Shown here: positions 4,437 through 40,714 of the stretch, in pieces | Numbering within the stretch: the stretch's first letter is position 1 | Layout: each line of letters begins with the position of its first letter | Assembly: GCA_965285935.1 (NCBI GenBank) | Contig: OZ260666.1 | Span: 22,320,001-22,384,000 of the forward strand | Length of the DNA: 64,000 nt | Direction: 5' to 3' | Source: Ophelia neglecta | Taxonomy: Eukaryota | The notes under the pieces: generated by a model | The model's database searches: none | What the model was told of the DNA's origin: nothing | What the model saw: only the letters and a program-made list of their open reading frames with translations | Translations under genes and position numbers: made by a program

Positions 4437-4846
4437 CTGCAGAGGCAAAAGGGTAACAATTAACAATTACACATTTTTTAAATTATATCTGTAGGACATG
4501 TATGAAAGAAATTATTTGAGATGGTATATAATATTCTTGAACAGTGAAGCTTAAGAGAAAGGATCAATATGCATTGTGACATCCATATTTCAATGACTTG
4601 CATATCAGCGAAAATAAAACGCAGAAGATACGTTATGCCAGCAGGTTGGAAGCTACTGTTATGAAAGGACCTTCAATGAAGTATTATGGGTTTTAATCAC
4701 GGCCTTGACCTACACTACAGGTCATGTAAGGCGCGTTTGCGTCCCAGCGTTCTGCGGGCGAGCCTTGGCGGGCCAGCAGATTGCCGCCGGCATTGCCGCT
4801 AGCTGGAGGTGAGTTTTCTTTAAGCCCGGACTGTACATTTACTCAC

Positions 4847-5736: not shown

Positions 5737-7426
5737 CTGAAAAAAAAACGGATTGATTTAACTATCACCTGAAGGTTATAGGTATGTAGTAATCTACAAA
5801 CTATCAAAATACGTCACTCAATATTGTGGATCATATTATTAGATATATAAGACAGTTGAGCATTACTGGGGAACGGTATCAATAGGTGAGGTCACTCGAT
5901 TAGGCTAGCCACTAGGCGGATCTTTACTAAAACTATGAGTAACCCAAAGATATAGGTTTGAAAGGTTTTATGATATACAATGGCGACTGGAAAATTACAT
6001 AAGAAAATCATCACATACAGAATTGAAGAGTGAAATATTATGCCTCGGTTACAGAATTCTGAAATCAATTTGCAGGATCAGCAAAGGGTCACAAAAGTTG
6101 CGGCTATGTGATTCATAATCTGCCCCCCCCCCCCCAACCGCGCCCCGGATGCTAATAATAAACATTCCCTAAGGCATGTGGAGTATGAGTGTCACAATGT
6201 TTGGCACGTCACAGCACTTGATTTAATCCATGTACTGATTACCGTCATATATATTGACACATTGAGTTAAAATGTCTTGTTTTTTGTCGCATTGCTAGAT
6301 AGCGACGCAATGCTAGGGGGCCCGGGGGCATACCCCCCAGAAGATGTTACCAAAATGAGGTGTCAAATAGTCCCATTAAAAGCAATCTAGTCATCTTAGC
6401 TTTGGGGAAAAAGTAGTCCGGCCATGGCCGGTGCGTTCGTTATTCCCCTGTTTATCACCCATTATTTATAAATCAGGAATGAGATTTTATAGAAATAAAC
6501 ATTTTATTACAATATTAGCGCAGGTCTCAACTAATTTGGAAAATTCTAATATTAAAAAGAAACTTGAGATTGCTCCCAGTAAACCGGGACCTGGCTGGTC
6601 GGTTCCCTGAGGGAGGAGAAATCTGTTTGGAAATTACATCTGGATCACTCTGTTTGTGCACTTGTTGTTCCGTAACATTAACACTGCTGTGCAACGAAGT
6701 CAGGCTTTCCGCGAAGGAGTGAATATCCTCGAAAAAACCTGACTAATTTATTGGAAAAACTGACTCAAAACCTGGTCATTTTACCAAAAAATTACCCTAG
6801 TTCCGCGGACAGGCGGGATGTCACTGACTCCATTGTACATTAACTGTTTGGGCACATTTAAGGTATTCGCATGCGTGAATGTTGTTGAAGGCTGAGGGAG
6901 GAACAGCTACTGCATGAAGGACCAGATATTATGACGGGTGAAAAACGACACAGTTACTCCGATCCCCAAATATTCCCCAATAGCCCCCAGTTCCTTTAAA
7001 AAAAACATAGTCGGGAGTGACATAAGTTAAATATGCACCAGTTATAAAATCAAAGCACAGCCACAAGCAAGCCAGATTATACGTCATTTGAAAACTGATT
7101 TTTTTCCCAAACACTTTGCTTTAAAATTAGATACACTTTGTTCATGATTTTTACTGCAAATTCACACTCAATGTAGACCTTGTATAGACCTGCATACTGT
7201 GGATAATGAAGAAAATAATATTCCGAGAAACAAGGCATGACCCATATATCAGTCTTAAATCCCGGGCATAAAGGGCTGGCTACTTCTTAGCGAGGTCGCC
7301 TTTATAATAATTCACCTCTAAGTTTTTATATCGGAATATTTTTGTTAGTATATTTGCCCCAGTAGTTTTTTCCATGTTGTGGTCTAGGTACAGTCCCGTA
7401 ATATTTATTACAATAAATAATCCTAC

Positions 7427-7609
7427 CTTAGACTCTCCCAAAAGAAACGGTGGTTGGACAACATTTTCCTGGGCATCTTGAAGATGTGGATCTTCATCCT
7501 GGTTTCTGCGTGACTCGAGGGGTTGAAATTCTTCACTTTCACTCATCCTTTGTTGCATTTCATCCGACATTTTTTCGTCTAACGGGCGTAGCGCTCGTTC
7601 TATGAACAT
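7427..7609 (-). CDS. Pro/Arg-rich uncharacterised protein, first coding exon
   Basis: Acceptor cctgcag| at 7618/7617, ATG at 7609, donor AAG|GTAGGA at 7427/7426 (phase 0, in frame with exon 2). Confidence 0.55.
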
Positions 7610-7843
7610 AGCGCTGACTGCAGGTTACCAATAGAATTCGTCTAGATTTCCAACTAATTGTCAATTTCTTTCTCTGTTTTAAACACAGTTTGTAGAAAAA
7701 GAACAAGTATCAGTTGTATCAGTGGTCCATCTTCCGACTCCTTTGAAAAAAAAAAGAATGTCCCTTTGTTCATACTTCATGGCTCAATTTTTCATCAAAT
7801 CAGAAGTGATGCGGGGAAAGTAGTAACAGTGGGGTGAGGAGAA

Positions 7844-7979
7844 ACCATGCCCACAAACCCGCTAGCTGGCATACCATGCCCACAAACCCGCTAGCTGACA
7901 TACCATGCCCACAAACCCGCTAGCTGACATACCATGCCCACAAACCCGCTAGCTGACATACCATGCCCACAAACCCGCT
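7844..7979. repeat. 29-bp tandem repeat, ~4.7 copies (accatgcccacaaacccgctagctgacat)
   Basis: Direct periodicity at 7844, 7873, 7902, 7931, 7960. Confidence 0.95.
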
Positions 7980-8981
7980 TCAAATTCTCAAAAGAGATTA
8001 TTCAAGTCAGGATAAAGTCGGCAAATCCTTTTTTAATTCAATCCTTTCAACAACAAAAAATTATTTAAATCAAATGTTTAGGTAGCAAGGAATAATTTGG
8101 TTTGTCCTCTTTTGATAAATTTTGGATTTAAGTGTGACAATTAATAGTATTTCCCATAGATTTTTATTCTTATCAGGCCCTTGAATAATGTGAACTGAAT
8201 ATTATGCGTTCCAGTTTAATCGATTATTAAAGTTGCAATTGATTAGTAAAGATGGTTGGGGTTATCACCCAATTCTTTATTATAGTCCTATTTCATGATC
8301 GTCCCATCACTTATGAATGTCCGAACTGTATAACCCAGCGGACAATTCTTACGCCCCGGATGTTAGCCTGTTAGTCTGGGCACCTCTCTCTGTGATCCCT
8401 GCAACAGTTCTGTTATATCTAGACCGGGACCTACGTGTAAAAACTGCACACCGGGCCACATATTCTCGAGACTGAAGAAATCCTGCCAGTATAACGCTTG
8501 AAAGCGACAAACGCGGCAGAATTGTATGTTACAACGTCGTGTATTATGGGGGATATAAACTGCGAATTCTCAAACTGTAAACAGACTACGGAACATCTCG
8601 CTATAAACTGCATTGAAATGGGTCCGGCTGTAAGGTCATTAGATCTGGACCATTGTGTGATGAAACACAAACCAGGCCCCGCCGTGGGTCAGAAACAAAT
8701 CTTATTTGCCCATCCATGACAAAAGTAAGCAAGCTACCTTCGTCATCTAAATAAAAACATAGCCTTGTCATACGACGTCAGGAGATGACGCATCCTTCCC
8801 GGAGATTAACACAACGATTAAGGTTAAACAGGTATAGATATGTAAATTACCCCACGTCATATGTGGAGCACAAAGGGCAATCTCCGCTGATAGTCAATTT
8901 ACTAAGACATCTGACATCTGACATAACCTGTGGAGAGGGAGTCTCTGCTCCTAGAGGGGATACACAGGCCACGCATTACTT

Positions 8982-9169
8982 CGCCAGATATTAGAGACAA
9001 ACTCTGAAGTCCTAAGACGAAACGTTTATTACAGTCGAACGAACAGAACAGCCTACACTACAGCATACACTACAGCCCACCGCACAGGAGGCCAACACAA
9101 ACTCAGCGGTGTCATCTAGCAAAAGACCTAACATTAAACGAGATCTAAATATAGAACAATATAGTGGCG
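8982..9169 (-). repeat. 3' LTR
   Basis: Direct repeat of 14748-14935; contains AATAAA on the minus strand. Confidence 0.93.
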
Positions 9170-9682
9170 CAGTTGCTTTCCACCTAATAATAGTAATCTT
9201 CTCATAGTCAAATTACCACTGGTACAAGCTATAACAAAATACTCTTACTAAATAACACTTTCTAAATAAAGAGCAATATTTCCTACGCCACATGAACTAA
9301 TAGCTTTGTTTTTCATTGTAAAACTACAAAATAATATGGTGGTGCAGTTGCCTTCCACATAGCAGGTCTTATAATAGTCTCACATAGGCAAAATACCATT
9401 TAAGTCTACCTTGTAACACTTTCTAAATAAAGGGTAGTATTACTTATACTGTATACTAGACACAAACTAATAGCCTTGCCTGTCATCACGAGACTACAAA
9501 AAATAAATTTGACTATAGATCTAAACAATAACAATATTTAACTTGCATACAAACTATTGTCTCTGAAGTGTTGCCGTGTTTAATGGATGGGAAAATCCTA
9601 ATTTAAACGTTGTCAACTATATTTTACCCTCCTAATTAACGCATACATTAACTGAAAACATAATTATTTGTGAAGCTACATG

Positions 9683-10009
9683 TTATATCTGCCAATCACC
9701 CGTGGTCATCCATCCTGGAGGTTTACGCACACGTTGTGGACGATCTGGAAGGGCCGATGGCACCGAGGCCGGTATTGGCACTGTGCTAGGCGATGTAGCC
9801 AAGGCATCAGGAGGGTCCAGATGGACGTCCAAAGGGGGATCCTCGTCCGCAGAGAGACCAAAAGGACCGAAGTCTGCCACTGGAGGATCACTGTAGTCCT
9901 CGTTGTGGTTTATGTCAATGTGAGTAGTGGAGTCCTCCTCGGATTCGGTGTCGGAATGCCAGTCATCAACTGGAATATGCATGACCAGAAGTGAGGTTAT
10001 GGTCAGCAT
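9683..10009 (-). pseudogene. pol: Pol C-terminal acidic/Pro tail of integrase (another frameshift)
   Basis: Ends RPQRVRKPPGWM, the RxxRxRxPPxW tail typical of Gypsy integrases. Confidence 0.7.
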
Positions 10010-11270
10010 GGGTGGCGTCAGGCACAGGGTACAACTCTGACGGTTTCACCTCATAGAGCTTACTACGAAATTTGGAGCCGATCAGTTTCTTTATTTTGAC
10101 AAATGTGGGCCCACAAGATGACACAATATAGCGATCACGGGCACTGTGTTTTGTGCCGTCACTCTTAATATACACTATGTCCCCGGGTGAGAACCTATCC
10201 GACGATGGAGTGATACCGAAGGGAGCCTTTGACTTTGCGCTGTGTAGATGATTTTCTGAACGAGAAATGTGCTGTTCCCTTGCTAGGTGACGGTCACTCA
10301 CGTTGATTTGTTGACCAGTTGATAGATCACGTTGGAAAAGCATTTCCCGAGCACTCAAGCCCCTGGATCGAATCCGTGAATTAAGAGTAGCCACGGCCAG
10401 GGCAAGATCAGTAGATGAGATTGGGCCACCATCAGGGTGCAATTTCTTGAGTTCGAGAGAAAGTTCTTGGACTGATCTTTCTGCAACCGGGTTTTTGTTT
10501 TTATTTTTCAGGCGACCCAACTCCAAATTCAACCCAAGTCGGGCAAGGGAGGGATCTCCCAGGAGACTCTGTAATGCGCTGGCGCCATCCACACGTACAC
10601 TTGCACCAAAGGGAGATTTAAACTCGGCAGTGCACTCTATGAGGGCGGAGCGTAAATGGACTTTTTTCTCAGACGAAATTAGTCTGGCAACAGTGTAAGA
10701 TGTCAAAGTTTCTCTCAGTACGAAGATCTTCTGCCGGGCACGACACAGAACGTCACAGGCAAAGGTAGTTCCTGGAGTGTTTGGTGGTGTGCCTGTCGAG
10801 AACTCCACCAACTCTTTTGGCAAAGATCGAAGAGATGCACAATGAGAGCACTTCTCTGTGACAGCTGCGATCGCCTCGGGTGATTTAAGGGCAAAGAAGT
10901 GCCTATCGAAAACACGGGCTAGCTGAGTTTTGGACGGGTGACTTAGCTGTAGATGTAGAGCGGTGGCAAGGCCATATAAGATATGGGCAGGCACAACTAT
11001 AAGTTGGCGTGGAGGTGAGAAAGGCGTTGTGTGCTTCACCACCAAGCAACCCTCACGGCCTATAGTTGCTCTTTGTAGGTAGCGCTTTACCTCTTTGATG
11101 TTTTTGGCTTTTGTAGAAGGGCAGGTTCCTTGATGGAGGTGAGAGTAGACACGCCTCAAAGTGGGACAGTCCTGTTGAGATTGCTTCCAAGTAGGAAGAT
11201 TTGTAAAGGGCATAGGACGACGACCTTCCAACACATCAGGCACGGTGACAGAGCAAACAGTGGCGGACTC
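9966..11270 (-). pseudogene. pol: Pol: integrase (frameshifted relative to RT/RH)
   Basis: HHCC motif (H..SH...CSHC), DDE triad (ACDV, RVDG, VAER) and a GDIVY/RYIV C-terminal domain. Confidence 0.88.
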
Positions 11271-13255
11271 GTTGTCTCAGCAATGAAGTCACAAATTTGG
11301 CAGCTCGGTTCGACACAATCCATAGCATTACGAGAGAGGTAGTCAGCAGGCAAATTGGCTGTGCCTGAGAGATTCTGCAAGGTAACATTGTATCTACTGA
11401 GGACTGACAAGAAATGAGACACCCTGGCACTAGACGAGAATTGTCCTCTCATCAGCTTTGAGTAAGCCTGCACGCAAGGCTTTGAGTCTGTAAGAATTTG
11501 AGTCTGGTTTTCTGACTCAATAATGTATGAGGACCAATGGTTGGTGGCGGATCCTATAGCCAATGCTTCCACTTCGCAGGGCAACCAGCGTGTTTGGTGT
11601 TGTTTCAACTTTGCAGAAAAGAAGCCACCCAACTTCATCTTGCCATCTCGAAGGATATATAGCACAGAACCTATACCTCCATTTCGTACAGCACCATCAT
11701 GAGTGATGATTAGCTGATCACTGGGGCGTGGGATGATAATGGTTTTGGCGCCACGAAGAGCCTTCTGGGCAGTCATAAAGGCATCTCGAAGGACTGGGTC
11801 CCAGAAAATATGATCCCTGGTATCCTTTCCTGCAACAGCTGTTTCCAGTGGAGCGAGGAGGGAAGATTGTTGAGAGATGCACTCCCCGATATGCTTGCAG
11901 GCTCCGAGCCATGATCTGAGACCTTTAACAGTCTTTGGTGGGTCTGCTGTGGCCAGCGGGTTAATTTTGTGAGGTGATACGGAGATAGAGCCTGAAGTCC
12001 AAATCCAACCAAGAACTGTGGTTGTAATTGGACATATTACAGTTTTGGTGTTGGACAAACGGAGATTGTTGCGCTGAAAGCAGAGCAAAACATGCTCCCA
12101 TGTCCTCAATAATTTTGCTACACTGTCTCCACCCACATATAGATCGTCTGCAATTTTCATTACAACACCTTCATGCAACAGCTCACCCAGAACTCTGTAC
12201 ATAAGTTCATCTAAATGCTCAGTTGAGCCAGGCATCCCCATGGCGGCTCTGGTATAGACCCGTATGCCGTTAAATGGTGTAATGATACCAAGATATTTCA
12301 TTGAATGTTTGTCCACGGGTAACTGAAAAAACTGACTGGTCATGTCTGATTTGATGATATAAGGCCACCTTGCCAGAAAGCTCAACACAGAATTGGTAGT
12401 GGTTACTCGGGAGGGGGGTGATTTTGCATAGCAGCCAAGGTTGACAAAAGAGGTGACCAAGCGATGTCCACCGGCCGGCTTGCGAACAAGGAAGCTAGGT
12501 GAAACATACTCTACGGAGATACCCTGCTCCTCGGGCTTTGCCAAGACACCAAGTGATTCTAAGTCATCCATCTTGGTTTGAAGTTCATCAAGATCACTAC
12601 GTTTGTAGGCAGGGAGATGGCCCTTCTGCTTAGGAGGTTCTACTGGGCCCATTGTAAGACGAGCTCTTAACCTCCCAGAGGCATCATTGTATTTGCCAAC
12701 CCGAGGATTGAAAACGTCATCGTACTCTAAATGGAGGGATAGAAATGCAGACCTCTCCGAAGCAGATAACTGGGAATTGGGATCTATAATTACTGAAGAG
12801 GAAAATGGTCTCTGATTTTCCACATGAGAAGGTGGCAAAGCGAGGGGTGGACTAGGCACTCCACCTGACATGTTAGGTGTGGAGACATAATGTATCTGGG
12901 CCACATGCTGGTTTCTTTTGAGGGATACTGGGATTTCTGTGAGATTGGGGATTCTAATATTTCCTTCTATTGCCCTGGTCATTGAAGGTTCGGGCCAATG
13001 GTTGAATGGGGAATCACCCCGTGGCTCGATACAAATGTCTTTGTCGCTGATCAGGTCCTCGGGAGCCTGTAGCTCTACGAAATCCCCAGGAAGTAAAACT
13101 GACTTCTGGTTGGACCTGATGAGGTACGACTGTGACCGGCGGACTAAAACATTGTCTACAGATTCTATGTGCCTGTTGTAAGGGATTTTTATTTTCCCTT
13201 TTATGATGAGACATTCTTTCGGAAAGTCAATGACGATGTGGTTATCTTTCAAGAA
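11260..13255 (-). pseudogene. pol: Pol: reverse transcriptase and RNase H (ORF 11156-13273)
   Basis: SPSFLVRK, KSDMTSQFFQ, MGMPGS, KIADDLYVGG; RNase H motifs THDGA, EVEALA, LTDSKP, NLPADYLSR. Confidence 0.9.
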
Positions 13256-13580
13256 CTCCGGCGAGAATGTCACAGTCCAGATTCTTGACGACCAGAGCCT
13301 CTAATTTGAAGGTTGTCGGACCGCGTGCAAGGGATATATGAACTTCTCCACAAGGTTCCAGCTTGGTAATACCGTCTGCCTGACTGGCCTTATGAAGAGT
13401 GCTTTTGACAGGTAAGTTAGCTCTAGCAGCAAAAGCCTGGCTTATCAAGGAGGAAGTGGCTCCAGAGTCACATGTAACAGTAACAGCATGGTGATTATAA
13501 AACAAGCTGAAGGAAGGAGAAGTACTGCTTTGTACACGTTTCACATGAGTCATTTCAGTGGATCGAGGCTTCGCCTGGCG
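13242..13580 (-). pseudogene. pol: Pol: aspartic protease domain (in frame with gag after TGA; frameshifted to RT at ~13255)
   Basis: VTCDSGATSSLI active-site motif; CDILAG flap motif. Confidence 0.85.
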
Positions 13581-14561
13581 TCATTCTTCATCCTCCACGT
13601 CCAGGTGTAGGTCATGTAAATCCTCGGAAATCTGAGGTTCAGGGTCAGGAACGGAAGATTCTTCTACTCGACAGGAACGAGCAAATAGTAGCTTATCAGC
13701 ACGAGAAAGAAAGAAACAAGTGGCTAATGTATGGCCACTATAACGTCGACCCTCTGCTTTGCATAGTCTGCACTCGTCTACTAGCCCCTGGGATTGTCTA
13801 GGGCGACGTTCCTTTGGTCGAAGCAGTTTCTTTTGGCTGTATTTGTGTTGAGTTGTGAATGAACGGGCAGCCTTCACCTCTTCACCTCGCAGTTCCTCCA
13901 GGAAACCATCCAGGGCGTCAACAATCTGGGGCTGCATATCTTTCAGTGTCATGCGTTGTAAATCATAGGCAAATGTGCGCTGGACTAGAGCCGGGAGGCC
14001 TGGATGTATAAGCTCCATCCACCGTAAGACAGCAAGCCTCTCAATTGTAGGGCTTATATCCTCATCGACAGCCACGTCTGTATTGTCGTGTTTGCGTTTA
14101 CAGCCACTTTTTAACAGGTTATCCTGAAGGTGGGCCAGGATGCGCTGATATAACCTTTCAGGGCGCTCGCCCTCCTCCCATACAATGGCTGTATATTTCA
14201 TAAATTGAGCTTCAGACTGCTGAAAACCATAGTATTTTCGAATGAACTGCCAAATCGACTCCATACTGGTGGAATTTCTGGTTATATCACCGGCCAGGTA
14301 GTGAGGTACCCATTGAGAAACCAGACCCAACATTTGGTTAAGATTTGCGGCCTTTTGGGCTGCAGTTAGACCGTCAGCGTCGGCTGTCAGGCCACGATTT
14401 GGATTGGCCGCTGTTTGCTTCTGCCAGGTGTGAGCGGCTTCAAGAAAAGGTTTAAAATTGTCATCTTGATTCAGCGTATACATTAAGTTATTCTTCCAAC
14501 TGGTAAAGGAAGAGAATGTCTCTTCTTCGGTAAGTTTCCAGGGCTTGAGAGCTTTGGCCAT
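13581..14561 (-). CDS. gag: Gag of the Troyka-type element
   Basis: 326-aa ORF just inside the PBS, with a C-terminal Cx2Cx9Hx4C knuckle (CRLC...H....C). Confidence 0.85.
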   Translation of the reverse strand: MAKALKPWKLTEEETFSSFTSWKNNLMYTLNQDDNFKPFLEAAHTWQKQTAANPNRGLTADADGLTAAQKAANLNQMLGLVSQWVPHYLAGDITRNSTSMESIWQFIRKYYGFQQSEAQFMKYTAIVWEEGERPERLYQRILAHLQDNLLKSGCKRKHDNTDVAVDEDISPTIERLAVLRWMELIHPGLPALVQRTFAYDLQRMTLKDMQPQIVDALDGFLEELRGEEVKAARSFTTQHKYSQKKLLRPKERRPRQSQGLVDECRLCKAEGRRYSGHTLATCFFLSRADKLLFARSCRVEESSVPDPEPQISEDLHDLHLDVEDEE

Positions 14562-14736
14562 GACTGATATTGACTGGTATTATCGCTCAGTTGAGGGTCG
14601 TGTAAACGAACGCTATACGGTACAGTATAGCGGTATGAATGTCTGCTTTAACTGTGCGTTTTCGCCGTTACGGGACTTACAAAGATGCCTACAGATTTGA
14701 GAGGAGAGAATCCGGGTTCTTTTAGAGTTCCTTATT

Positions 14737-14747
14737 CGCTGCCACCA
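14737..14747 (-). other. Primer-binding site TGGTGGCAGCG (complementary to the 3' end of tRNA-Leu)
   Basis: Abuts the 5' LTR; complement of ...CGCUGCCACCA, the end of animal tRNA-Leu(AAG/TAG) plus CCA. Confidence 0.75.
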
Positions 14748-14935
14748 CGCCAGATATTAGAGACAAACTCTGAAGTCCTAAGACGAAACGTTTATTACAG
14801 TCGAACGAACAGAACAGCCTACACTACAGCATACACTACCGCCCACCGCACAGGAGGCCAACACAAACTCAGCGGTGTCACCTAGCAAAAGACCTAACAT
14901 TAAACGAGATCTAAATATAGAACAATATAGTGGCG
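14748..14935 (-). repeat. 5' LTR
   Basis: Direct repeat of 8982-9169; directly followed on the minus strand by the PBS. Confidence 0.93.
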
Positions 14936-16275
14936 CTTGTTATTCTCAACAGCATTCGTCTCACATAATAAACTACATTAAGTGAGTTTGACACCCACTT
15001 CCTCATTTTATTAATGTTGCCGTATACAAAATTCACGGATCATAAGTCAATGAAAAAAGTAATTAAACTACTGGCGGAATGCAACTGTCTACGAACTTGA
15101 TATCAATGAAATCCTTTATATGCTGTTTGTTCTTATTGTGAATTGTGTATTATGAAACCTTACTTTATACACGCTGGCAAATAATAAAACATAATATATT
15201 CCTTTTTTTGGTTCAGAATTAAGAGGCTACATGATATATGGATGGTATATGTGTTGAAATATAACTATATATATATATGTACATAAAAAAGGGCAACATG
15301 TTAGACAAATCTATATAATATTCATAATTATATTATAGTACAATGTACAGTTACCCTAACATCCTTCATGCTAGATAATAAAATAAAATATATACATGTA
15401 TGTTATTTGAGTTTTTACAGCGACAAATCAATACGGACATGAACATATTAAAGTCACATGATCCAATTACCGCGCTAATTCTCAATTGAGGATCAATTCC
15501 AGCTATTGACACGTAACACTTTCTTCTGTGTCGCCACCGCTTATCAGGATGGAAAAGTCTGGTAATTTCGCGCATCGTTAAATTCCACGCAGTAAGTAGC
15601 CCCACAATCAGCACGGAATAACACTAGTCACTGGGTGGAAATGAACGATGCGAAAAACGGCTAGCCTTTAAACTATGCACGGAATAAACCTACCTTAAAA
15701 CTTGGCATAATTACCCGACTTCGACTTATCGTAAAAATGTCAAAATAAGCACTCACACAACTTTAAGGAAATGCATCAGTCAATTATGAGTAAAATTTAA
15801 AGCGCGTTTTATATGTTATAACTTCGTCTATGACATATTTTCTATCTTTGATTACTTTTATTTAAGGACATCAAGTATAAAGTATATATTACGATATTAC
15901 GGACCTTGTAGTCTATTTCATTGATAATGTTAAGAAATAAGAAGAAATAACAGCATTGAAACACTAAGTACAAATTTATTCTTATGCCAACGACTTAAAA
16001 AAATTTCTCCCCCACCCGTCCCCCAATCTCATCCCAACAACGATTATTTATCAATCGACATCTCAGCATTATTCTTAACTTGTGGTTCGGGCTGAGTATG
16101 ATAACTCTAAAGCAAAGCAACCTGCATCCGATACAGTCTTATTTTGTACAACATCAATTCCGCCTGTCTCAAAGTATAATAATTTAATGCTACGTTTTCT
16201 GTTTGTACGCCGTTAAGATATGTCATGTTAGGTAAACAAATGTTAAAACATTGTGTAAAGTGGACCGCCGTCTCG

Positions 16276-19200
16276 TCAACCGTTTTTCTCATCAGAGCCT
16301 TGCTCCGTGAGGTATTCTACGATTTTTATACGTTTATTTTGCGACGCCACGTCCAGTGGAGTACGGCCTTGTTTATCTCTGATCTTCAGGTCTGCGCCTT
16401 TGCCAAATAGATATTTCACGACCTCTAGATGCCCCTCCTGAGCCGCACTGTGTAAAGCTGGGAAGCCATCACTCCCTGGTAGGTTGATGTCAGAGCCCTG
16501 CTTGATGAGGTATTCTACTACATTGATGTGTCCATTGTAAGAAGCAGTACCAAGTGGTGTTCGACCATGTTTATCTCTGATCTTCAGGTCGGCGCCTTCA
16601 CCAAGTAGATATTTCACGACCTCTAGATGACCTCTCAGAGCTGCACTGTGTAAAGCTGGTACGCCATCACTCCCTGGTAGGTTGATGTCAGAGCCCTGCT
16701 TGATGAGGTATTCTACTACATTGATGTGTCCATTGTAAGAAGCATTACCAAGTGGTGTATTGCCGTCAATACCTATGATCTTCAGGTCCGCGCCTTCACC
16801 AAGTAGATATTTCACGACCTCTAGATGACCTCCCAGAGCTGCACTGTGTAAAGCTGGATTGCCATCACTCCCTGGTCGGTTAATGTCCGAGCCCTGCTTG
16901 ATGAGGTATCCTACCACCTTGATGTGTCCACTGAAAGAAGCACTACCAAGTGGTGTTCGACCGAGTTTATTTATGATCTTCAGGTCCGCGCCTTTACCAA
17001 GTAGATATTTCATGACCTCTAGATGCCCCTCCTGAGCTGCACTGTGTAAAGCTGGATTGCCATCACTCCCTGGTCGGTTGATGTCCGAGCCCTGCTTGAT
17101 GAGGTATTCTACTACCTTCATGTGTCCATTGTAAGAAGCATTACCAAGTGGTGTATAGCCGTCAATATCTATGATCTTCAGGTCCGCGCCTTCACCAAGT
17201 AGATATTTCACGACCTCTAGATGCCCCTTCTGAGCCGCACTGTGTAACGCTGGATTGCCATCACTCCCTGGACGGTTGATGTCCGAGCCCTGCTTGATGA
17301 GGTATTCTACCACCTTGATGTGTCCATTGTAAGAAGCATTACCAAGTGGTGTATAGCCGTCAATATCTATGATCTTCAGGTCCGCGCCTTCACCAAGTAG
17401 ATATTTCACGACCTCTAGATGCCCCTTCTGAGCCGCACTGTGTAACGCTGGATTGCCATCACTCCCTGGACGGTTGATGTCCGAGCCCTGCTTGATGAGG
17501 TATTCTACCACCTTGATGTGTCCATTGTTAGAAGCATTACCAAGTGGTGTATAGCCGTCAATATCTATGATCTTCAGGTCCGCGCCTTCACCAAGTAGAT
17601 ATTTCACGACCTCTAGATGACCTCCCAGAGCTGCACTGTGTAAAGCTGGATTGCCATCACTCCCTGGTCGGTTGATGTCCGAGCCCTGCTTGATGAGGTA
17701 TCCTACCACCTTGATGTGTCCACTGAAAGAAGCACTACCAAGTGGTGTTCGACCGAGTTTATTTATGATCTTCAGGTCCGCGCCTTTACCAAGTAGATAT
17801 TTCATGACCTCTAGATGCCCCTCCTGAGCTGCACTGTGTAAAGCTGGATTGCCATCACTCCCTGGTCGGTTGATGTCCGAGCCCTGCTTGATGAGGTATT
17901 CTACTACCTTCATGTGTCCATTGTAAGAAGCATTACCAAGTGGTGTATAGCCGTCAATATCTATGATCTTCAGGTCCGCGCCTTCACCAAGTAGATATTT
18001 CACGACCTCTAGATGCCCCTCCTGAGCTGCACTGTGTAACGCTGGATTGCCATCACTCCCTGGTCGGTTGATGTCCGAGCCCTGATTGATGAGGTATTCT
18101 ACCACCTTCATGTGTCCATTGTTAGAAGCATTACCAAGTGGTGTATAGCCGTCAATATCTATGATCTTCAGGTCGGCGCCTTCTCCAAGTAGGTATTTCA
18201 CGACCTCTAGATGACCTCTCAGAGCTGCACCGTGTAAAGCAGGATCGCCATCACTCCCTGGTCGGTTGATGTCCGAGCCCTGCTTGATGAGGTATCCTAC
18301 CACCTTGATGTGTCCACTGAAAGAAGCATTACCAAGTGGTGTTCGACCGAGTTTATTTATGATCTTCAGGTCCGCGCCTTTACCAAGTAGATATTTCATG
18401 ACCTCTAGATGCCCCTCCTGAGCTGCACTGTGTAAAGCTGGGTAGCCATCACTCCCAGGTCGGTTGATGTCCGAGCCCTGCTTGATGAGGTATTCTACTA
18501 CCTTCATGTGTCCATTGTAAGAAGCATTACCAAGTGGTGTATAGCCGTCAATATCTATGATCTTCAGGTCCGCGCCTTCACCAAGTAGATATTTCACGAC
18601 CTCTAGATGCCCCTTCTGAGCCGCACTGTGTAACGCTGGATTGCCATCACTCCCTGGACGGTTGATGTCCGAGCCCTGCTTGATGAGGTATTCTACTACC
18701 TTCATGTGTCCATTGTTAGAAGCATTACCAAGTGGTGTATAGCCGTCAATATCAATGATCTTCAGGTCCGCGCCTTCACCAAGTAGATATTTAACGACCT
18801 CTAGATGCCCATTGTATGCCGCACTCTGTAAAGCTGGATTGCCATCACTCCCTGGTCGGTTAATGTCCGAGCCCTGCTTGATGAGGTATTCTACCACCTT
18901 GATGTGTCCATTGTAAGAAGCAGTACCAAGTGGTGTATAACCATGTTTATCTATGATCTTCAGGTCGGCGCCTTTACCAAGTAGATATTTCACGACCTCT
19001 AGATGACCTCTCAGAGCTGCACTGTGTAAAGCTGGTACGCCATCACTCCCTGGTCGGTTGATGTCAGAGCCCTGCTCGATGAGGTATTCTACTACCTTGA
19101 TGTGACTATTGTAAGAAGCACTACCAAGTGGTGTTCGACCGAGTTTATTTATGATCTTCAGGTCCGCGCCTTTACCAAGTAGATATTTCACGACCTCTAG

Positions 19201-19668
19201 ATGCCCCTCCTGAGCTGCACTGTGTAAAGCTGGATAGCCATCTCTCCCTGGTCGGTTGATGTCAGAGCCCTGCTTGATGAGGTATTCTACCACCTTGATA
19301 TGTCCATTGTAAGAAGCAGTACCAAGTGGTGTATGCCCGTCAATATCTATGATATTCAGGTCGGCGCCTTTGCCAAGTAGATATGTCACGACCGGTAGAT
19401 GACCTCTCAGAGCTGCACTGTGTAAAGCTGGTACGCCATCACTCCCTGGTCGGTTGATGTCCGAGCCCTGCTCGATGAGGTATTCTACCACCTTGATATG
19501 TCCATTGGAAGAAGCACTACCTAATGGTGTATGGCCATCATTTACCAAAATATTTAAATCTGTTCCTTTTCCTAGTAGATTTTTCACGACCTCTAGATTT
19601 CCTTCCTGAGCTGCACTGTGTAAAGTATGTGGCTTGTGGTCGTCGTGGTGTTCCGCCATTACGTCTTC
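16276..19668 (-). CDS. Ankyrin-repeat protein, terminal exon with 34 ANK repeats (17 x 66-aa double units)
   Basis: Acceptor ttttctccccag|GAA at 19669/19668 (phase 0). Alternating ALHSAAxxGHLEVVKYLL and PLGxASxxGHIKVVEYLI repeats; TGA at 16276; AATAAA on the minus strand at ~15975. Confidence 0.93.
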   Translation of the reverse strand, partial: EDVMAEHHDDHKPHTLHSAAQEGNLEVVKNLLGKGTDLNILVNDGHTPLGSASSNGHIKVVEYLIEQGSDINRPGSDGVPALHSAALRGHLPVVTYLLGKGADLNIIDIDGHTPLGTASYNGHIKVVEYLIKQGSDINRPGRDGYPALHSAAQEGHLEVVKYLLGKGADLKIINKLGRTPLGSASYNSHIKVVEYLIEQGSDINRPGSDGVPALHSAALRGHLEVVKYLLGKGADLKIIDKHGYTPLGTASYNGHIKVVEYLIKQGSDINRPGSDGNPALQSAAYNGHLEVVKYLLGEGADLKIIDIDGYTPLGNASNNGHMKVVEYLIKQGSDINRPGSDGNPALHSAAQKGHLEVVKYLLGEGADLKIIDIDGYTPLGNASYNGHMKVVEYLIKQGSDINRPGSDGYPALHSAAQEGHLEVMKYLLGKGADLKIINKLGRTPLGNASFSGHIKVVGYLIKQGSDINRPGSDGDPALHGAALRGHLEVVKYLLGEGADLKIIDIDGYTPLGNASNNGHMKVVEYLINQGSDINRPGSDGNPALHSAAQEGHLEVVKYLLGEGADLKIIDIDGYTPLGNASYNGHMKVVEYLIKQGSDINRPGSDGNPALHSAAQEGHLEVMKYLLGKGADLKIINKLGRTPLGSASFSGHIKVVGYLIKQGSDINRPGSDGNPALHSAALGGHLEVVKYLLGEGADLKIIDIDGYTPLGNASNNGHIKVVEYLIKQGSDINRPGSDGNPALHSAAQKGHLEVVKYLLGEGADLKIIDIDGYTPLGNASYNGHIKVVEYLIKQGSDINRPGSDGNPALHSAAQKGHLEVVKYLLGEGADLKIIDIDGYTPLGNASYNGHMKVVEYLIKQGSDINRPGSDGNPALHSAAQEGHLEVMKYLLGKGADLKIINKLGRTPLGSASFSGHIKVVGYLIKQGSDINRPGSDGNPALHSAALGGHLEVVKYLLGEGADLKIIGIDGNTPLGNASYNGHINVVEYLIKQGSDINLPGSDGVPALHSAALRGHLEVVKYLLGEGADLKIRDKHGRTPLGTASYNGHINVVEYLIKQGSDINLPGSDGFPALHSAAQEGHLEVVKYLFGKGADLKIRDKQGRTPLDVASQNKRIKIVEYLTEQGSDEKNG
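16290..19640 (-). repeat. 198-bp coding tandem array with a ~594-bp higher-order block
   Basis: Near-identical 198-bp units. A diagnostic triplet (NNG / YNGHMK / VMK-INKLGRT-FSG) recurs three times. Confidence 0.92.
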
Positions 19669-19749
19669 CTGGGGAGAAAACAATAAACCTGAGTTGTATA
19701 CATTACAATAAAGTAGAACCACAAACCATAAACAGAAAACAACGTTTAC

Positions 19750-19845
19750 AGACATCTTCATTAAGTGTTCTCTGTCTAAGAGAAGCCATCTCATATTGGA
19801 CAATACGTCGTCCTGGAAACAAGCAGTAGAACCACAATAAGTCAT
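19750..19845 (-). CDS. Ankyrin gene internal exon (alternative acceptors at 19845 or 19812)
   Basis: Acceptors cttgcag|ATG or gtttccag|GAC, both phase 0. Donor TCT|GTAAAC is weak. The 81-bp intron that follows has no stop codon. Confidence 0.55.
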
Positions 19846-20799
19846 CTGCAAGTGAAAGATACATAGGGATAATGGGTGACATATTGCCATCATGTTTATT
19901 AACTTGTCTTATAAAGGACATGTGTCGATATTTTGTTGGTATCGGCCTAACTTCGACCTGATGTGGTCCTGACTAGCGGGATCAACCGGTCTCACAAAAC
20001 CGGTCTCTTTCAGTGCCGAATCGAAATATCACGCATTTAGTTGACTTCTTTAGATAACACCACTGGTATTTTCTCACCGCTGTTCTAGTTAGCTGTGACT
20101 TCTCATGTCTTATTTTTGAGGGTTATTGAGGCAGGGACTGAGCTTTGACATACATTTACATGATACACTACGTGGTTTTTAAGTGAAGCTAGCCCCTATT
20201 ATCTACCTAGAAATATGCCTATATGTAATGGTCTCATTCGGCTATTACTACGGCTTAAATATCTCAAAGGAAAGGGCTTGACATTTTTATATTGGCCATA
20301 ATAAGCAAACCACTGTGTTGCCTGGTAATAATGTGCCATGTATATTTTTGTTTCTTTCACGGCAGCGTCATGCGTATCAATGTCAGGCTTCGATTTATAT
20401 TATATCCATATATATATGTCTAGTTTTAGTAGTACGTGACGATACCTCAGAAATTGACTTGAATTAAAGATAAGTTATCTTAATATTGATATAAATGTAA
20501 GGCACTTTAAATTTTGGCTATTGATTAAACGCGGACGTGCGGAAGCTCTGTGACGCGGACGTCAAGGGTATTTCAGAGTGAGAGGGAGCAAAAAAGCGCC
20601 AGCAAGGCTAGGGTTATAGCAGAGGGTTAATTTTTAAATGTACCAAAAAGCCTATCTTTTCACGTATTGTCTGTTTTCATTCCATTTGGCAAACAATTTG
20701 ACATTTGCCTCAATATTACACGCAAGCCAATCACATTTGTTATGTCTCAGACTAACTATAACGAGGACGTCATCATCCATGCTATTATAATTGATACAT

Positions 20800-23470: not shown

Positions 23471-24979
23471 GAAGGGCACGTACAAATGTGCGTTCGACAA
23501 ATAAACTCATCGGGTAAGAACCAGAAGATAAAAACGGGGAGTGGATACCCGGTAGACAAGCCAAAATCATTGGTCTAGAAGAGTCCATTAAATCAGTACG
23601 AAATCTTCAGGAGCCAGCGGCCGCAGCAACCCACACAAAGCAACATTCATGAAAATGGCCGAAAAGTTATTAAACAAGCGATGAATGAGCAGTGGCTAGA
23701 TGGAGTAGTGACTAGTAGTACGAATAAGAGTGAATATGAAATCCCCATATGCAAACAGGGAGGAGTAAGTCTAACAGTTTCTGTGGAATTAGGCGAAAAT
23801 AAATGTATGGGAATATTAGATAAAGTACTACATATCACAATACTGAATGAATAGCCAGGATCTTGATGCCAAAGTTACAAACTGACAAAAAGGTTACATT
23901 ACGAGGGTCGTTATTATGTCAATATGATTCCAGAATATTTAATATAATAGAAAAGAATATTTAATATAATAGAAGGATAAGAATATTAAATTGTTATCTA
24001 CAGAGCTCCAATGAATGATGATCTCCTATAAGATTATAAGTATTGCATGGTTTGGAGTTGAGGGTGGCACTCGCACTAGTCAGTGTTCCATGAGGCGAGC
24101 CAGATCAAAAAAACAGACGAGTTAGTAGTAAAATTAGGACAGAGATAAAAAAAAATGCCCCGAAGAGCATTTGAAGGATTGAAGAGATAGCATCTAAATA
24201 CTACATTGTTAGTATACCTCACCTCAACAGATAAATTAATCTTGGAAACAGAGCCTCCTACAGCTGTACAGGAGCTGAATTACATCAATTACAAAATGGA
24301 CAAAAAAAATAGGCATTTCCAAGGAATGTGATTCCGAATGTCAAGAATTGCACTACACAAAAGGTACTGTTAGCGGTGGTAAATTTCACTTAACATTACA
24401 GATAATATCTACTTTCTTGGTAAAGACCATCACAGCCAGACTTTGCTTATGGGCTTCAAGAACATAGAGGGTCAATTGGCCAGGGGGCTAGAAAATAATC
24501 ACAGAATGATGTAGAAATGTGCATAGAAAAGGCTCCCAACAGGCAGATGCAGACGCTTTGAGTCGCCTAACAGAAATACTGGACAACTTTAATTGTTACC
24601 CAGCAAGATTCAAAATCAGGCCATTGCCTGTTGGTGGATGTTCTTACTGCTAGAGAACCATAAAACTGGGCATGGATGACGTGAACGACCACTCCGACGT
24701 CAATTATGTAAATGTAGATATACGACAATTTTTACAGCTCACGGGGTGGCAGTACAAAAAAACGCACCAACAAAAGTTCCAGAAGATACCGCAGAATACC
24801 TAAGAGACGAGGTTGCTACTTAAGAAAATACAGAGGAAGAACCGGAAGAGGAGCTGCCAATGGAAGAACCTATTGCAGCAATTGGTAGAGGCCCTGGAGA
24901 GACTACAATAAATGATCATTTCACGTATTCACAACATAAACCCATTACAAACAAAATACCAATCAAAGTACTTAGCCAT

Positions 24980-27900
24980 AGGATATCAGCTATACTGAGA
25001 GGCCTGATTTGGGTGTTTCTAATAATTATGTGGAAAGCTGTTTTGCTGAAATTGAGAATAATGGCAGGTCTGATACAGTTATTGGTATTGTTTATCGTCC
25101 CCCCGGGACAGATCCGGACTTATTTAATGATCTTATTAATGACGTGGTCAGTAAAATTAAAGCTGAACATAAACACTGTATAATTTTTGGAGACTTTAAC
25201 CTAAATCTCCTGAATTACGATACCCACAGGGGAACCCAGGAATTTGTTAATAATATGTTCTCTAATTCTATGTTGCCAGCTATTGTCAAACCCACTCGAG
25301 TTACCAAACAAAGTGCTACCCTCATTGACAATATATTCCTGGATGTTGTTGGACTTGATAATTCCTTACAGGGAGTTTTCCATTGTGATATATCTGATCA
25401 CTTCCCAGTTTTTTTTATTGATTATTCATTAACCGTCAAGCAAAACCCCCAAAGACCTGTGCAGAGAAGGAAATTCGGTCCTAAGAATATAGAAAAGTTT
25501 GGTAAATGTTTATCAGTACCGGGTCTGTGGTCAAACATTTATTCTGCCAATAGTACTCAGCAGGCCTACACCAGATTTCACGAGTGCATGACAACCACAT
25601 TTGATCAATGTTTCCCTTTTTCCACATCAAACGGATCAGTGTATCGTAACAGAAAGCCCTGGTTGACGGAGGGATTGAAAAAGTCGATTACTACAAAAAT
25701 TAGACTTTATATAATTAGTAAGAAATATCCTTCCACTACAAATATTAAGCAATACAAACTCTTTAATAATAAATTAGTGTCTTTATTGCGACTCCAAGAA
25801 AAAAACTATTACCATACACGACTTCAGAACTCTAGTAATAATTTAAAATGTTCATGGCAAATTATCAAAGAAGTTATCAACAAAAGAAAACCCAATAAAA
25901 AACAAGACTTTTTTTTAATTAATAATAAAAAGGTTACTGATCCTAGAACCATCGCTGATGGATTTAATGACTTTTTCGTAAATGTGGGCCCATCATTGGC
26001 AGCATCCTTTCCTTCGACCAATGATATTTCACTAGATTATTCAAATGTAAATAGTATTTTCATTGAACAAACATCAGTAAAAGAAATAGGTCAGATTTTA
26101 AATTCCCTTAGGGATAGCAGCGCTGGATGGGATGGTTTTACTGCTAAAGTGATGAAACAAGTAATCTCTTCATATGTTCAGCCGCTGACTTATATTATTA
26201 ATATATCACTACAAGAGGGTATTGTACCAGATGAATTAAAAATTGCTCGTGTTGTACCTATATTTAAGGGTGCTGATCCATCTCTGTGCACAAATTATAG
26301 ACCTGTATCAGTGCTACCCATCTTCTCAAAGGTTTTTGAGAGAATAATGTGTAGCAGGCTACTCTCTTTTATTAATGATAATAATTTACTATATGGTAAA
26401 CAATTTGGATTTAGAGAAGGTCATTCCACTAATATGGCTTTAATCCTCCTAACTGATCACATCTCGCGAGCCATTGAGGGTGGTGACTGTGTCTTAGGCC
26501 TGTTTCTAGATTTCTCTAAGGCCTTTGACACAGTCAACCACAATATCCTGATGGATAAATTATGCAAATATGGCATAAGAGGACAAGCCCATAAATGGCT
26601 TAAAAATTATCTTTCTAATCGATCTCAATTTGTGGATTATGATGGTGCTTTCTCGCAGTCCAAACTTATACAATGTGGTGTCCCACAAGGTTCTGTATTG
26701 GGCCCAATTCTTTTCATTCTATACATAAATGATCTTGCAAAAGTATCACAAATTATAGAAATTATACTCTTTGCCGATGATTCCAATGCTTTCATCACAG
26801 GGAAAAATGCAAATGACCTAATTACAAAGGTCAATGCAGAAATCCCTAAGATAACTAAATGGCTTGAAATAAATAAGCTTACGCTGAATATTAAAAAGAC
26901 ACATTTTATGATATTTAAGAGTAGTCGAAAAAAATTTCTATGTATTAATGGATTATTAATTAAAGGACAACCAATTGACCAAGTCGAGTCGACAAAGTTT
27001 CTAGGGGTCATGCTTGACTCAACTCTCTCTTGGAGTCAACACACTCAATATATTAAAGGCAAGGTAGCCAAAGGTATTGGTATTATTACTAAAGCCAGAA
27101 AATTTCTTTACACCTCTACACTCCGAACTTTATATTTTTCTTTCGTGTACCCATATTTTATATATTGCAACGAGGTATGGGGTAATGCCTGTAAGAAATA
27201 CCTTGACCCTCTTACTAAACTACAAAAGAGAGCAATAAGATTGGTGGCTGGATGTTCTAGAAAGGAGCATACAGAACCCTTGTTCTCTGATCTACAAATT
27301 TTGACGATAGGTAAAATTCACATCCAATGCAACCAAATTATAATTTACAAATACTTGCATGGTAAATTGCCTCACCCTTTGTTATGTTTATTTAAGTTGA
27401 ATGCCGAAACGCATGGATATGGTACTAGGCAATCCGGCAACATTCATCTCCCTCAAGTTAAAACTGAACTTACACTTAAATCGTTTGTATATAACAGTGC
27501 GGCTAGCTATAACCAAATCTCAAAGGTCTTGGATTACAATGTCGGTCTTCCAACCTTTAAACGTCATCTGAGGAAATATGTGCTCAGTGTTTAAAAAATA
27601 ATTCTCTTTGTGTATAATTACTTTTTTATTTTTTTATTTTTTTTTTTTCAGAGTAAATTCATATACTTGTCATTTTTTATTTTGCGTGTAATGTTATACA
27701 CAGGCTTGATGTTCGTGACTGTTTATGGAATATCTTAGATGCAGAGAGTATTGTGCTGCTGTTACTGCAGTATTTAAACTTATCTATTTGCATAGTGGAT
27801 TTACAGGCTGGGTGCGGCGTGGGCATGCCCAGCGATTGCAACCGGGTTGCGGTTGCTGGGCCTGTCCATGCCGTATTTATTTATTCATATTTATGTTTTT

Positions 27901-28258
27901 GGTGTGTGTGGTTCTGGGGCCGTCGCGGCGGGGGGTCTGGGGCCGGCGGGGGGCGGGGGGGGCTCGCTTTTGCGGGGTCTTCCTCTGCCCTGGCTGCCGT
28001 CTCCTGCTCTCCTGCTGTGGTGGCTCTAGAAAAAACATTCCCCTTCTTGTGGATATGGAGCTTTGATTTGATTTTTTTTTTTCCTGCACTTGTATGCACC
28101 ATCTTGTTATTTGAAGATTTCTACCGGTATTTGTGGGGCCAATAAGCTTAATGCTTTCTTGCCCCAGGGTATTCAGCTTTATTTATATCTAATATGTATT
28201 GTCAAATATTATGTATGTATGTATATATTGCGGTCTGTGTATCCAATAAACATTATTA
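24980..28258 (+). mobile_element. 5'-truncated CR1-group LINE insertion with 8-bp TSD
   Basis: TSD ttagccat at 24972-24979 and 28259-28266; 3' stem-loop ggggc...gcccc (28135-28165); AATAAA followed by an (ATT)n tail. Confidence 0.88.
25009..27594 (+). CDS. LINE ORF2: C-terminal half of the APE endonuclease plus reverse transcriptase (frame open from 24982)
   Basis: EN motifs VYRPP, GDFN, TLID, SDH; RT motifs NYRPVSVL, DFSKAFDTV, GVPQGSVLGP, FADD. No internal stops. Confidence 0.93.
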   Translation: MGVSNNYVESCFAEIENNGRSDTVIGIVYRPPGTDPDLFNDLINDVVSKIKAEHKHCIIFGDFNLNLLNYDTHRGTQEFVNNMFSNSMLPAIVKPTRVTKQSATLIDNIFLDVVGLDNSLQGVFHCDISDHFPVFFIDYSLTVKQNPQRPVQRRKFGPKNIEKFGKCLSVPGLWSNIYSANSTQQAYTRFHECMTTTFDQCFPFSTSNGSVYRNRKPWLTEGLKKSITTKIRLYIISKKYPSTTNIKQYKLFNNKLVSLLRLQEKNYYHTRLQNSSNNLKCSWQIIKEVINKRKPNKKQDFFLINNKKVTDPRTIADGFNDFFVNVGPSLAASFPSTNDISLDYSNVNSIFIEQTSVKEIGQILNSLRDSSAGWDGFTAKVMKQVISSYVQPLTYIINISLQEGIVPDELKIARVVPIFKGADPSLCTNYRPVSVLPIFSKVFERIMCSRLLSFINDNNLLYGKQFGFREGHSTNMALILLTDHISRAIEGGDCVLGLFLDFSKAFDTVNHNILMDKLCKYGIRGQAHKWLKNYLSNRSQFVDYDGAFSQSKLIQCGVPQGSVLGPILFILYINDLAKVSQIIEIILFADDSNAFITGKNANDLITKVNAEIPKITKWLEINKLTLNIKKTHFMIFKSSRKKFLCINGLLIKGQPIDQVESTKFLGVMLDSTLSWSQHTQYIKGKVAKGIGIITKARKFLYTSTLRTLYFSFVYPYFIYCNEVWGNACKKYLDPLTKLQKRAIRLVAGCSRKEHTEPLFSDLQILTIGKIHIQCNQIIIYKYLHGKLPHPLLCLFKLNAETHGYGTRQSGNIHLPQVKTELTLKSFVYNSAASYNQISKVLDYNVGLPTFKRHLRKYVLSV

Positions 28259-40444: not shown

Positions 40445-40714
40445 GCAAACCACTTAAAGCTCGTATAACGCAGGAAGGCAGTATGTTGAGATGTGACGTT
40501 CAATCTACTTCTCTACCAGTAAGGGCCCGACCCCCAATGTTGTATACATGGTTCCGGAATGGTTCTTTTCATGTCAATGAGACAAATGATTCCTACCTAC
40601 CACCACCAGTAGAAAATTGGCGGATAGGCATTTCGCTTTATTCCTGCTATGGGAGAGAAGAAGGCTCTTCCTTTGTTTCGGACCAAAGTCGGAATGTTTC
40701 CATTACCGAAAGAG
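40445..40714 (+). CDS. Ig receptor exon 3: C2/I-like Ig domain
   Basis: Acceptor gttatacag|; MLRCDV...YTWFRNG...YSCYGRE; donor G|GTAGAT; phase 1-1. Confidence 0.85.

Follow-up and report, generated by a model that had tools for sequence, protein, structure and literature searches.

A probable ankyrin-repeat-only gene of Ophelia neglecta with in-register repeat turnover and a fast-changing hairpin codon

The ankyrin-repeat locus

The 64,000-nucleotide stretch of the Ophelia neglecta genome analysed here (GenBank assembly GCA_965285935.1, contig OZ260666.1, positions 22,320,001 to 22,384,000 of the forward strand; hereafter the window, with positions counted from its first letter) carries on its minus strand a long and regular array of ankyrin repeats, which probably belongs to a real, functional gene. 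The array lies in an unbroken minus-strand open reading frame (ORF) of 1205 aa (16276..19893) in the ORF list of the window. Within this frame, the open frame itself, Pfam matches and a division into 33-aa lines delimit the main and last coding exon (16276..19668), which comprises an N-terminal cap, 32 internal repeats and a C-terminal cap. The exon ends in a TGA stop codon (16276-16278, minus strand) directly after the C-terminal cap, and the stop holds the same place in four copies of the subfamily, the ends of which read EKNG, VNYG, ENNG and EING. The motif AATAAA (15975..15980, minus strand), about 296 nt past the stop, is a candidate polyadenylation signal, judged from the sequence only.

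The upstream boundary of the exon is marked by a pyrimidine-rich stretch (19669..19885, minus strand), which resembles an intron tail and ends in a splice-acceptor-like AG (19670-19669) directly upstream of ORF residue 76. This tail is 72–100 % conserved beside all 26 members of the gene family described below (26/26 scored matches, all on contig C9). Because the exon begins at this AG, the gene probably contains at least one further exon. A sequence-only reading of this DNA, made by a model before the present analysis, had described a single-exon module; the description holds for the array and probably not for the gene as a whole.

Two candidates were found for the beginning of the protein. 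An in-exon ATG (19657..19659, minus strand) lies in a good context (GTAATGG) and, to judge from the N-termini of the paralogues, is a possible start codon; it is kept as Met in most paralogues and is Ile in the copy at 22.06 Mb. The predicted product counted from this Met has about 1,127 residues. The other candidate is an upstream mini-exon (24916..24945, minus strand), reading ATG GGT .. TGT TGT GAA .. and then GTGAAATGA, which is located within a conserved 120-bp block (24860-24979). This block lies 4.1–8.3 kb upstream of all eight subfamily genes scored, in the right orientation, and in the alignment of the eight copies the ATG, GGT (Gly2), Cys4, GAA (Glu6) and the 9-nt donor are invariant. 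If joined to the main exon in phase 0, the mini-ORF would give a Gly2/Cys4/Cys5 N-terminus of the myristoylation/palmitoylation type, a proposal that is unproven. The mini-exon is called into question by a TGA at codon 5 in two of the eight copies; moreover, conservation reaches about 90 % throughout the 250-bp block, so that an exon-specific signal is not seen at the mini-ORF. A second conserved donor, AAG/GTGAGT, is found about 70 nt further upstream of the mini-ORF, and in the window it has been pushed beyond a long interspersed nuclear element (LINE)-type retrotransposon (24980..28257, plus strand), which lies in the presumed first intron and carries an 861-aa reverse transcriptase ORF (25009-27594).

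Architecture of the repeat array

The periodicity of the array was detected by Tandem Repeats Finder (period 198, 16.4 copies, 89 % matches, 1 % indels, score 4882) and by Pfam, which matched the ORF to Ank_2 (E=0, 1301.8 bits against a cut-off of 27.3), to Ank in 32 stretches (835.6 bits) and to Ank_4 in 33 stretches. The protein thus consists of 33-residue repeats above the gathering scores of the ankyrin repeat superfamily (Pfam clan CL0465). When cut every 33 residues from residue 84, it falls into 34 repeats with zero insertions or deletions, in which an A type (xDGxPALHSAAxxGHLEVVKYLLGxGADLKIxx) alternates strictly with a B type (xxGxTPLGxASxxGHxKVVEYLIxQGSDINRPG), giving 17 A/B double units, exactly as the sequence-only reading had counted them.

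The 32 internal 99-bp repeats (16375..19542, minus strand), arranged as alternating A and B repeats in 198-bp double units, were delimited by repeat finding and alignment. They are flanked by an A-type N-terminal capping repeat (19543..19641, minus strand) and a B-type C-terminal capping repeat (16279..16374, minus strand), both recognized from the 33-aa lines and from unit distances. The divergence of these caps, also part of the earlier claim, is confirmed by the distances: unit 1 differs from the other units at 44–75 of 198 nt and unit 17 at 48–75, as against 1–31 between pairs of internal units. Such a layout, in which internal repeats with a constant framework are enclosed by an N- and a C-terminal cap, is that of a designed ankyrin repeat protein (DARPin). 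Among proteins of solved structure, the predicted product comes closest to the 24-repeat ankyrin-R/B domain (4rlv, E=4.6e-162) and to DARPin concatemers.

The unit of conservation is the pair of repeats, as the A and B repeats are only 35.8 % identical, while the 15 internal double units have a mean identity of 85.9 % at the protein level (range 75.8–100 %) and 90.6 % at the DNA level. The distance matrix further revealed a higher-order repeat of three units (594 bp; 16672..18651, minus strand), which is present in three copies (units 6–8, 9–11 and 13–15) together with an extra unit 12. Units 7, 10 and 14 are 1–4 nt apart, units 6, 9, 12 and 13 are 1–5 nt apart and units 8, 11 and 15 are 8–16 nt apart. 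The 17 units are therefore few types rather than independent variants.

Distribution of variation within the repeat unit

The framework of the array was claimed to be nearly invariant, with substitutions clustering at the positions that are randomised in DARPin libraries; the list of these positions is reportedly that of Binz and colleagues from 2003. The register was set on an alignment to the solved DARPin 5le2, such that line position k corresponds to DARPin position k+1. The internal repeats of 5le2 themselves differ at positions 2, 3, 5, 13, 14 and 33 and by three framework changes. These six positions in the A and B repeats make up 12 of the 66 columns of the double unit, here called DARPin-type.

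Of the 66 columns, 41 are invariant across the 15 internal double units, which confirms the near-constant framework. Variable columns comprise 10 of the 12 DARPin-type columns and 15 of the other 54 (Fisher p=5.8e-4), and the DARPin-type columns hold 54 % of the summed entropy. They also account for seven of the 11 columns with an entropy of at least 0.9 (p=2.4e-4), located at positions 2, 3, 5, 13 and 14. The variant strings listed for the hairpin (DID/NKL/DKH/GID/DKQ; G-[H,R,Y,N]-TP; G-[V,Y,N,D,F]-PA) and for the end of helix 1 (QE/LR/YN/QK/LG; SN/YN/NN/FS) were all found, and the coordinates given for the array were likewise correct. The correspondence with the DARPin positions is nevertheless partial, because position 33 is nearly constant (I or R in A, an invariant P in B) and the remaining four high-entropy columns are DARPin positions 1, 10, 17 and 26. 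Helix geometry would place positions 10, 13/14 and 17 on one face of helix 1. Taken together, these results support a location of the variation on the predicted binding (concave) face, a placement that depends on published knowledge of ankyrins and DARPins and on the 5le2 alignment.

The near-identical twin and repeat turnover

An inverted, near-identical copy of the locus is present at C9:23.47 Mb (C9:23454001-23495299), 1.14 Mb away, and the duplication extends over at least 44 kb (window 4-43873). Window and twin are 99.5–99.9 % identical over most of the span; the stretch at window 33880-43873 is 99.89 % identical with no indel, and at one end (window 4-1559) the identity falls to 94.6–97 %. 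The duplicated stretch includes an immunoglobulin-type gene (36844-41782). The 3.3-kb LINE at 24980-28257 is not found in the twin, which indicates a very recent insertion.

Comparison of the two arrays reveals both the conservation and the turnover of units. Window units 3–16 correspond to twin units 2–15 with a difference of 0–1 nt each, whereas 6 nt separate the two copies of unit 1. The twin lacks an equivalent of window unit 2, and its unit 16 repeats its unit 15 exactly, so that the recombination-shuffling of units proposed by the sequence-only reading is seen as one unit lost and one doubled. The three single-base differences between the twin arrays are all replacements (B24, B9 and B12). 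With two unit-level events beside three point changes, the gain and loss of units is as frequent as substitution over the whole array. Within units, Q or L at A12 and I or K at B1 occur in all four of the four combinations, which requires either exchange within units or recurrent mutation. When the twin is ignored, the nearest neighbour of each of the 15 window units (15/15) lies inside its own array, which indicates that the array grew through recent internal duplication. Repeat turnover by recombination is thus real.

The twin is either a paralogous, palindrome-like duplication or the second haplotype misplaced in the assembly; in the latter case, the difference between the arrays would be the polymorphism in repeat number and repeat order that the earlier note had predicted. 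The same evidence raises the question of an assembly artefact, according to which repeat number, repeat order and the twin would derive from a mis-assembled tandem repeat or from a second haplotype placed as an inverted duplicate. An identity of 99.5–99.9 % over most of at least 44 kb would suit such an origin, as many marine invertebrates show allelic divergence in this range, and the public short contigs are unable to span the array. On the other hand, the window copy and the twin differ by the 3.3-kb LINE and by two unit-level changes, so that both exist as distinct molecules, and the drop in identity to 94.6–97 % at one end also speaks against an artefact. Moreover, the 33-aa periodicity is strict over 3.4 kb without a frameshift, 16 other arrays share the same register, and the array would stand even if the twin were the other allele. 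An assembly artefact is therefore regarded as very improbable.

Three sequencing runs, from one sample and one study, were available for comparison. Since their contigs extend over the flanks and the presumed intron in addition to the exon, the runs are DNA. One contig of one run joins position 16382 to 18829 out of register and with a break in the frame; this joint is probably a graph artefact or derives from a paralogue, and was disregarded.

The paralogue family

A paralogue census, proposed in the earlier note, yielded a family of about 26 loci. A 200-aa query gave 218 matches in the O. neglecta genome, with 150 of 1978 candidates scored, and among the 150 matches listed all but one are located on C9. 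A 286-bp query from the 5' end, comprising the intron tail and the N-terminal cap, gave 26 scored matches, every one of which lies in the 15.5–23.7 Mb interval of C9; eight of them have 84–100 % identity (20.06–23.70 Mb) and the other 18 have 72–81 % identity (15.5–17.65 Mb). The arrays were read at 17 of the 26 loci. They share one common 66-aa register, contain from about seven to 27 double units, close with one of a few types of cap, and are encoded in open frames of 455–1837 aa. Searches among 5.8 billion proteins, one for the complete sequence and one for a family member of 467 aa, returned only generic ankyrin proteins with 25–49 % identity, the best of them at 46–49 %. The family is lineage-specific and clustered on one chromosome.

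Some members of the family show peculiarities of their own. The paralogue at 23.58 Mb (L016, C9:23579001-23589000) contains a seven-unit (1386-bp) higher-order repeat about three times, carries one in-frame TGA within its array and another in the upstream mini-exon candidate, and is probably a decaying copy. In several of the paralogues at C9:15.5-17.65 Mb (L019–L027), the strand opposite the ankyrin array is open for 260–460 codons, which would most simply be a by-product of the stop-free repeated unit.

Selection on codons

Codon changes were counted by parsimony on a FastTree tree of 179 distinct units, for which 207 of 237 sliced lines were kept; the 30 lines left out were pre-exon lines, N-terminal cap units and units without the xPAL hairpin. 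These tree-based counts gave 394.8 synonymous and 677.2 replacement changes, with a global ratio of replacement to synonymous rates (omega) of 0.525. The 12 DARPin-type codons carried 46.5 % of the replacement changes against an expected 18 % (Mann-Whitney p=4e-4), and their omega was 0.96, or 1.23 when measured against the global synonymous rate, compared with 0.37 for the other 54 codons. A tree-free control, based on 86 disjoint nearest-neighbour pairs among 176 distinct units with the twin left out, gave omega values of 1.0 (DARPin-type codons) and 0.39 (all other codons); measured against the global synonymous rate, the DARPin-type omega was 1.06–1.23 across both methods. In the framework, the pairs showed 241 replacement and 203 synonymous differences, with about three times as many replacement sites. 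The surface codons as a class look unconstrained and not positively selected, which mostly reflects relaxed constraint.

A single codon departs clearly from this pattern. Position A4, the residue before P-A-L-H at the tip of the hairpin (DARPin position 5), holds 13 codons for 12 residues and in the 86 pairs showed 43.8 replacement differences where 13.0 were expected (omega 3.4, p=4.3e-11). In a test that excluded the twin and the two terminal units of each array and cut the units in four registers (offsets 0, 17, 33 and 50), A4 was the top codon at each offset (omega 3.3–4.3, p<=4.1e-10), followed by B9 (DARPin position 10, in the B-repeat helix; omega 1.7–2.4, p 5.1e-5 to 0.018), with all omegas of A4 and B9 derived from models that are not aware of recombination. 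The persistence of the excess at all four offsets rejects an artefact of the cutting edge as its cause. The decay of CpG was likewise rejected, as only two of the 33 differing pairs, counted again without the twin, were of the CpG type. The synonymous count of 23.7 at A4 in the tree-based analysis results from the averaging of paths between multi-nucleotide codon states.

The earlier note had taken the surface variation as a sign of adaptive recognition and had proposed per-codon dN/dS as a check. The outcome is divided: the variation is clustered and A4 is robustly above 1, with B9 second, while the pooled surface class stays at 0.96–1.0 against 0.37–0.39 for the framework. The pooled value introduces an alternative based on neutral churn, in which the arrays form a young, weakly constrained or non-functional repeat family, the surface positions being merely the least constrained ones and having no adaptive recognition role. 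The framework omega, which is high for a structural core, would fit such a family, as would the stops in some copies, the failure to find a close homologue in 5.8 billion proteins and the composition of the listed sequencing runs, which include none on record as RNA. Nevertheless, the framework omega lies clearly below 1, subfamilies that share just 72–81 % identity in their 5' flanks have retained open frames, and the A4 excess is robust to the cutting register. Neutral churn is thus considered unlikely, although it deserves serious attention.

Interpretation of the locus

The explanation that accounts best for these observations, and which we hold with moderate confidence, is a protein-coding gene for an ankyrin-repeat-only protein that belongs to a lineage-specific family and combines in-register recombination, a constrained framework and one fast hairpin codon. 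Unequal in-register recombination between 198-bp double and 594-bp triple units duplicates, deletes and re-associates units, as is seen between window and twin. Purifying selection maintains the framework (omega about 0.4), some ten codons of the hairpin and the helix-1 outer face drift nearly freely (omega about 1), and one codon at the tip of the A-repeat hairpin is replaced at a higher rate than synonymous change (omega 3.3–4.3). The product would be a long intracellular solenoid, the concave face of which presents many slightly different putative binding patches. Such a solenoid may serve as a scaffold or as a binder of other proteins, with a putative ligand surface that turns over quickly.

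Several observations weigh against this explanation. The start of the protein is fixed neither by the in-exon ATG nor by the mini-exon, which are candidates only, and the single-sequence AlphaFold2 model of the full 1,127 residues is unusable (mean pLDDT 43). Some relatives look damaged, with one TGA inside an array and two in the mini-exon candidate. Pooled over the surface codons, omega is about 1, and relaxed constraint alone accounts for all but one or two codons. Even at A4, many differences between near-identical units are two-nucleotide swaps of existing states, such as AAT/TAC in five pairs, so that part of the signal may be an exchange of old variants and not new mutation; moreover, recombination between units can inflate site-wise counts. 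The search for sequencing runs listed three, from one sample, none of them on record as RNA. Finally, the length and order of the array rest on the assembly, as the listed contig pieces that lie wholly inside the array measure 117–126 bp.

Comparison with known repeat systems

The solenoid of ankyrin-R/B binds many partners on its inner groove. The present array resembles the membrane-binding domain of these canonical ankyrins (ankyrin-R/B, 24 repeats; 4rlv, 7tw3) in being a long uninterrupted solenoid, yet, unlike ANK1-3, it shows no ZU5, UPA or death domain in Pfam and meets its stop directly after the C-terminal cap. Moreover, the repeats of canonical ankyrins are each distinct and are conserved between species, whereas those of the array are near-identical and unstable. 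The array also differs from systems that are completed by somatic rearrangement. In the variable lymphocyte receptors (VLRs) of lampreys, an incomplete germline gene is flanked by donor cassettes and is rearranged in somatic cells, whereas the germline exon described here is complete with both caps.

A DARPin typically has 2–3 internal repeats. According to the DARPin literature (PMC8683736) and the structures 5le2 and 6mol, these proteins share with the array the caps, the internal stack, the constant framework and the variable surface positions. In contrast to them, the array is natural, comprises 34 repeats of two alternating types and carries TPLG and PALH instead of TPLH; position 33 hardly varies, positions 1, 10, 17 and 26 do, and target binding is putative.

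The evolutionary regime is most closely paralleled in fungi. The study of Dyrka et al. 2014 (PMC4986451) describes ankyrin repeats of fungal NOD-like receptors (NLRs) that are near-identical, change in number by recombination and have their selected positions on the concave face, and the O. neglecta array shares with them the near-identical tandem repeats, the recombination-changed number and the variable concave face. Highly conserved repeats, defined in the same study by a threshold of 85 % identity over 100 aa, are stated there to be rare in animals (0.8 %); the internal double units described here, with their mean of 85.9 %, exceed this threshold, though only at the level of the double unit. 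The present family differs from the fungal receptors in being animal, in having a pair of unlike repeats as its conserved unit, and in the number of codons clearly above neutrality, which is one here compared with five positions at the fungal ankyrin locus (PMC4986451). In place of the fungal polymorphism in repeat number, there is a near-identical copy, allele or paralogue, that differs by one unit lost and one doubled. Concerted evolution of repeats through unequal crossing-over (PMC5100051) and relaxed or positive selection between repeats (PMC5120217) are general findings.

A further difference concerns effector domains. Fungal NLRs combine a NACHT or NB-ARC domain with an N-terminal effector, and Pfam found no such combination in the ORF and 10 neighbouring ORFs. 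No NACHT, NB-ARC, TIR, death-fold or enzyme domain was found by Pfam in this set, and the ten neighbours, all on the minus strand, had zero Pfam matches. Similarly, no effector domain was found by Pfam in the ORF and 14 other ORFs of the window, a search that ORFs below 70 aa and spliced exons would escape. The innate-immune sensor suggested by the sequence-only reading is thus not borne out by the domain content, as the ORF is ankyrin-only.

These comparisons bear on the idea of a germline-encoded variable recognition module, in which the protein would be an intracellular innate-immune sensor or would act alongside effector-bearing relatives, either as a free recognition subunit or as a decoy. 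The regime resembles that of the ankyrin repeats of fungal NLRs (PMC4986451), the family forms an expanded cluster, replacement is fast at A4 and B9, and another gene of the genome carries the same A/B array type beside a Mab-21_C match that is weak (E=1.3e-4) and falls short of the Pfam cut-off. The absence of the listed domains from the ORF and its 10 neighbours and the small number of codons above neutrality, only one or two, argue against such a module, which we regard as doubtful; the immune-sensor idea is no more than a possibility. A more specific proposal is that of a germline repertoire of about 26 free, ankyrin-only 'natural DARPins', generated by hairpin-tip selection and unequal crossing-over, which would provide detachable recognition or decoy subunits for ankyrin-effector fusions of the same genome, for example Mab-21-like ones. 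This proposal is likewise improbable; if true, the repertoire would parallel, in an animal, the system of non-self recognition that fungi base on repeats.

The gene with the Mab-21_C match (L031, C12:4220274-4225760, plus strand) has an open frame of 1829 aa, with N-terminal ankyrin repeats, a middle region of about 700 aa and a C-terminal A/B array. The match lies in the middle region and scores 22.4 bits against a cut-off of 24.1. A cGAS/Mab-21-like protein fused to an ankyrin array is possible.

As it stands, the favoured ankyrin-repeat-only gene family represents the ordinary case of a very common repeat that has expanded in one lineage. If expressed, it would offer a clean natural animal example of ankyrin binding surfaces diversified repeat by repeat and coupled to unequal crossing-over, a regime documented so far mainly in fungal NLRs. 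The 26 arrays, together with the twin that differs by two events, provide material for weighing unit turnover against point substitution, and hairpin position A4 and helix position B9 are nominated as likely ligand contacts.

Other elements of the window

Downstream of the ankyrin gene, a long terminal repeat (LTR) retrotransposon (8982-14935) contains a gag-like ORF (13581-14561) and pol ORFs (9966-13273). It is common to the window and the twin and is not present at the matching point of three older paralogues (L016, L017 and L030). Upstream of the main exon, a short stretch (20422-20618) reaches a word depth of 5,700–11,000 in all three DNA runs, compared with about 20–110 beside it, and is a very high-copy short interspersed repeat; many loose ends occur within it at 20512-20547.

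Two proline- and asparagine-rich ORFs (263 and 304 aa) are located on the minus strand at 3671-5757. They have no Pfam match, are conserved in the twin with several replacements, and could form a low-complexity gene of their own, located downstream of the ankyrin gene. A minisatellite at 1838-2452 is open on both strands, in frames of 202 aa (minus) and 187 aa (plus) that each encode short-peptide repeats, and a related array with about 80 % identity is present in the region of the twin.

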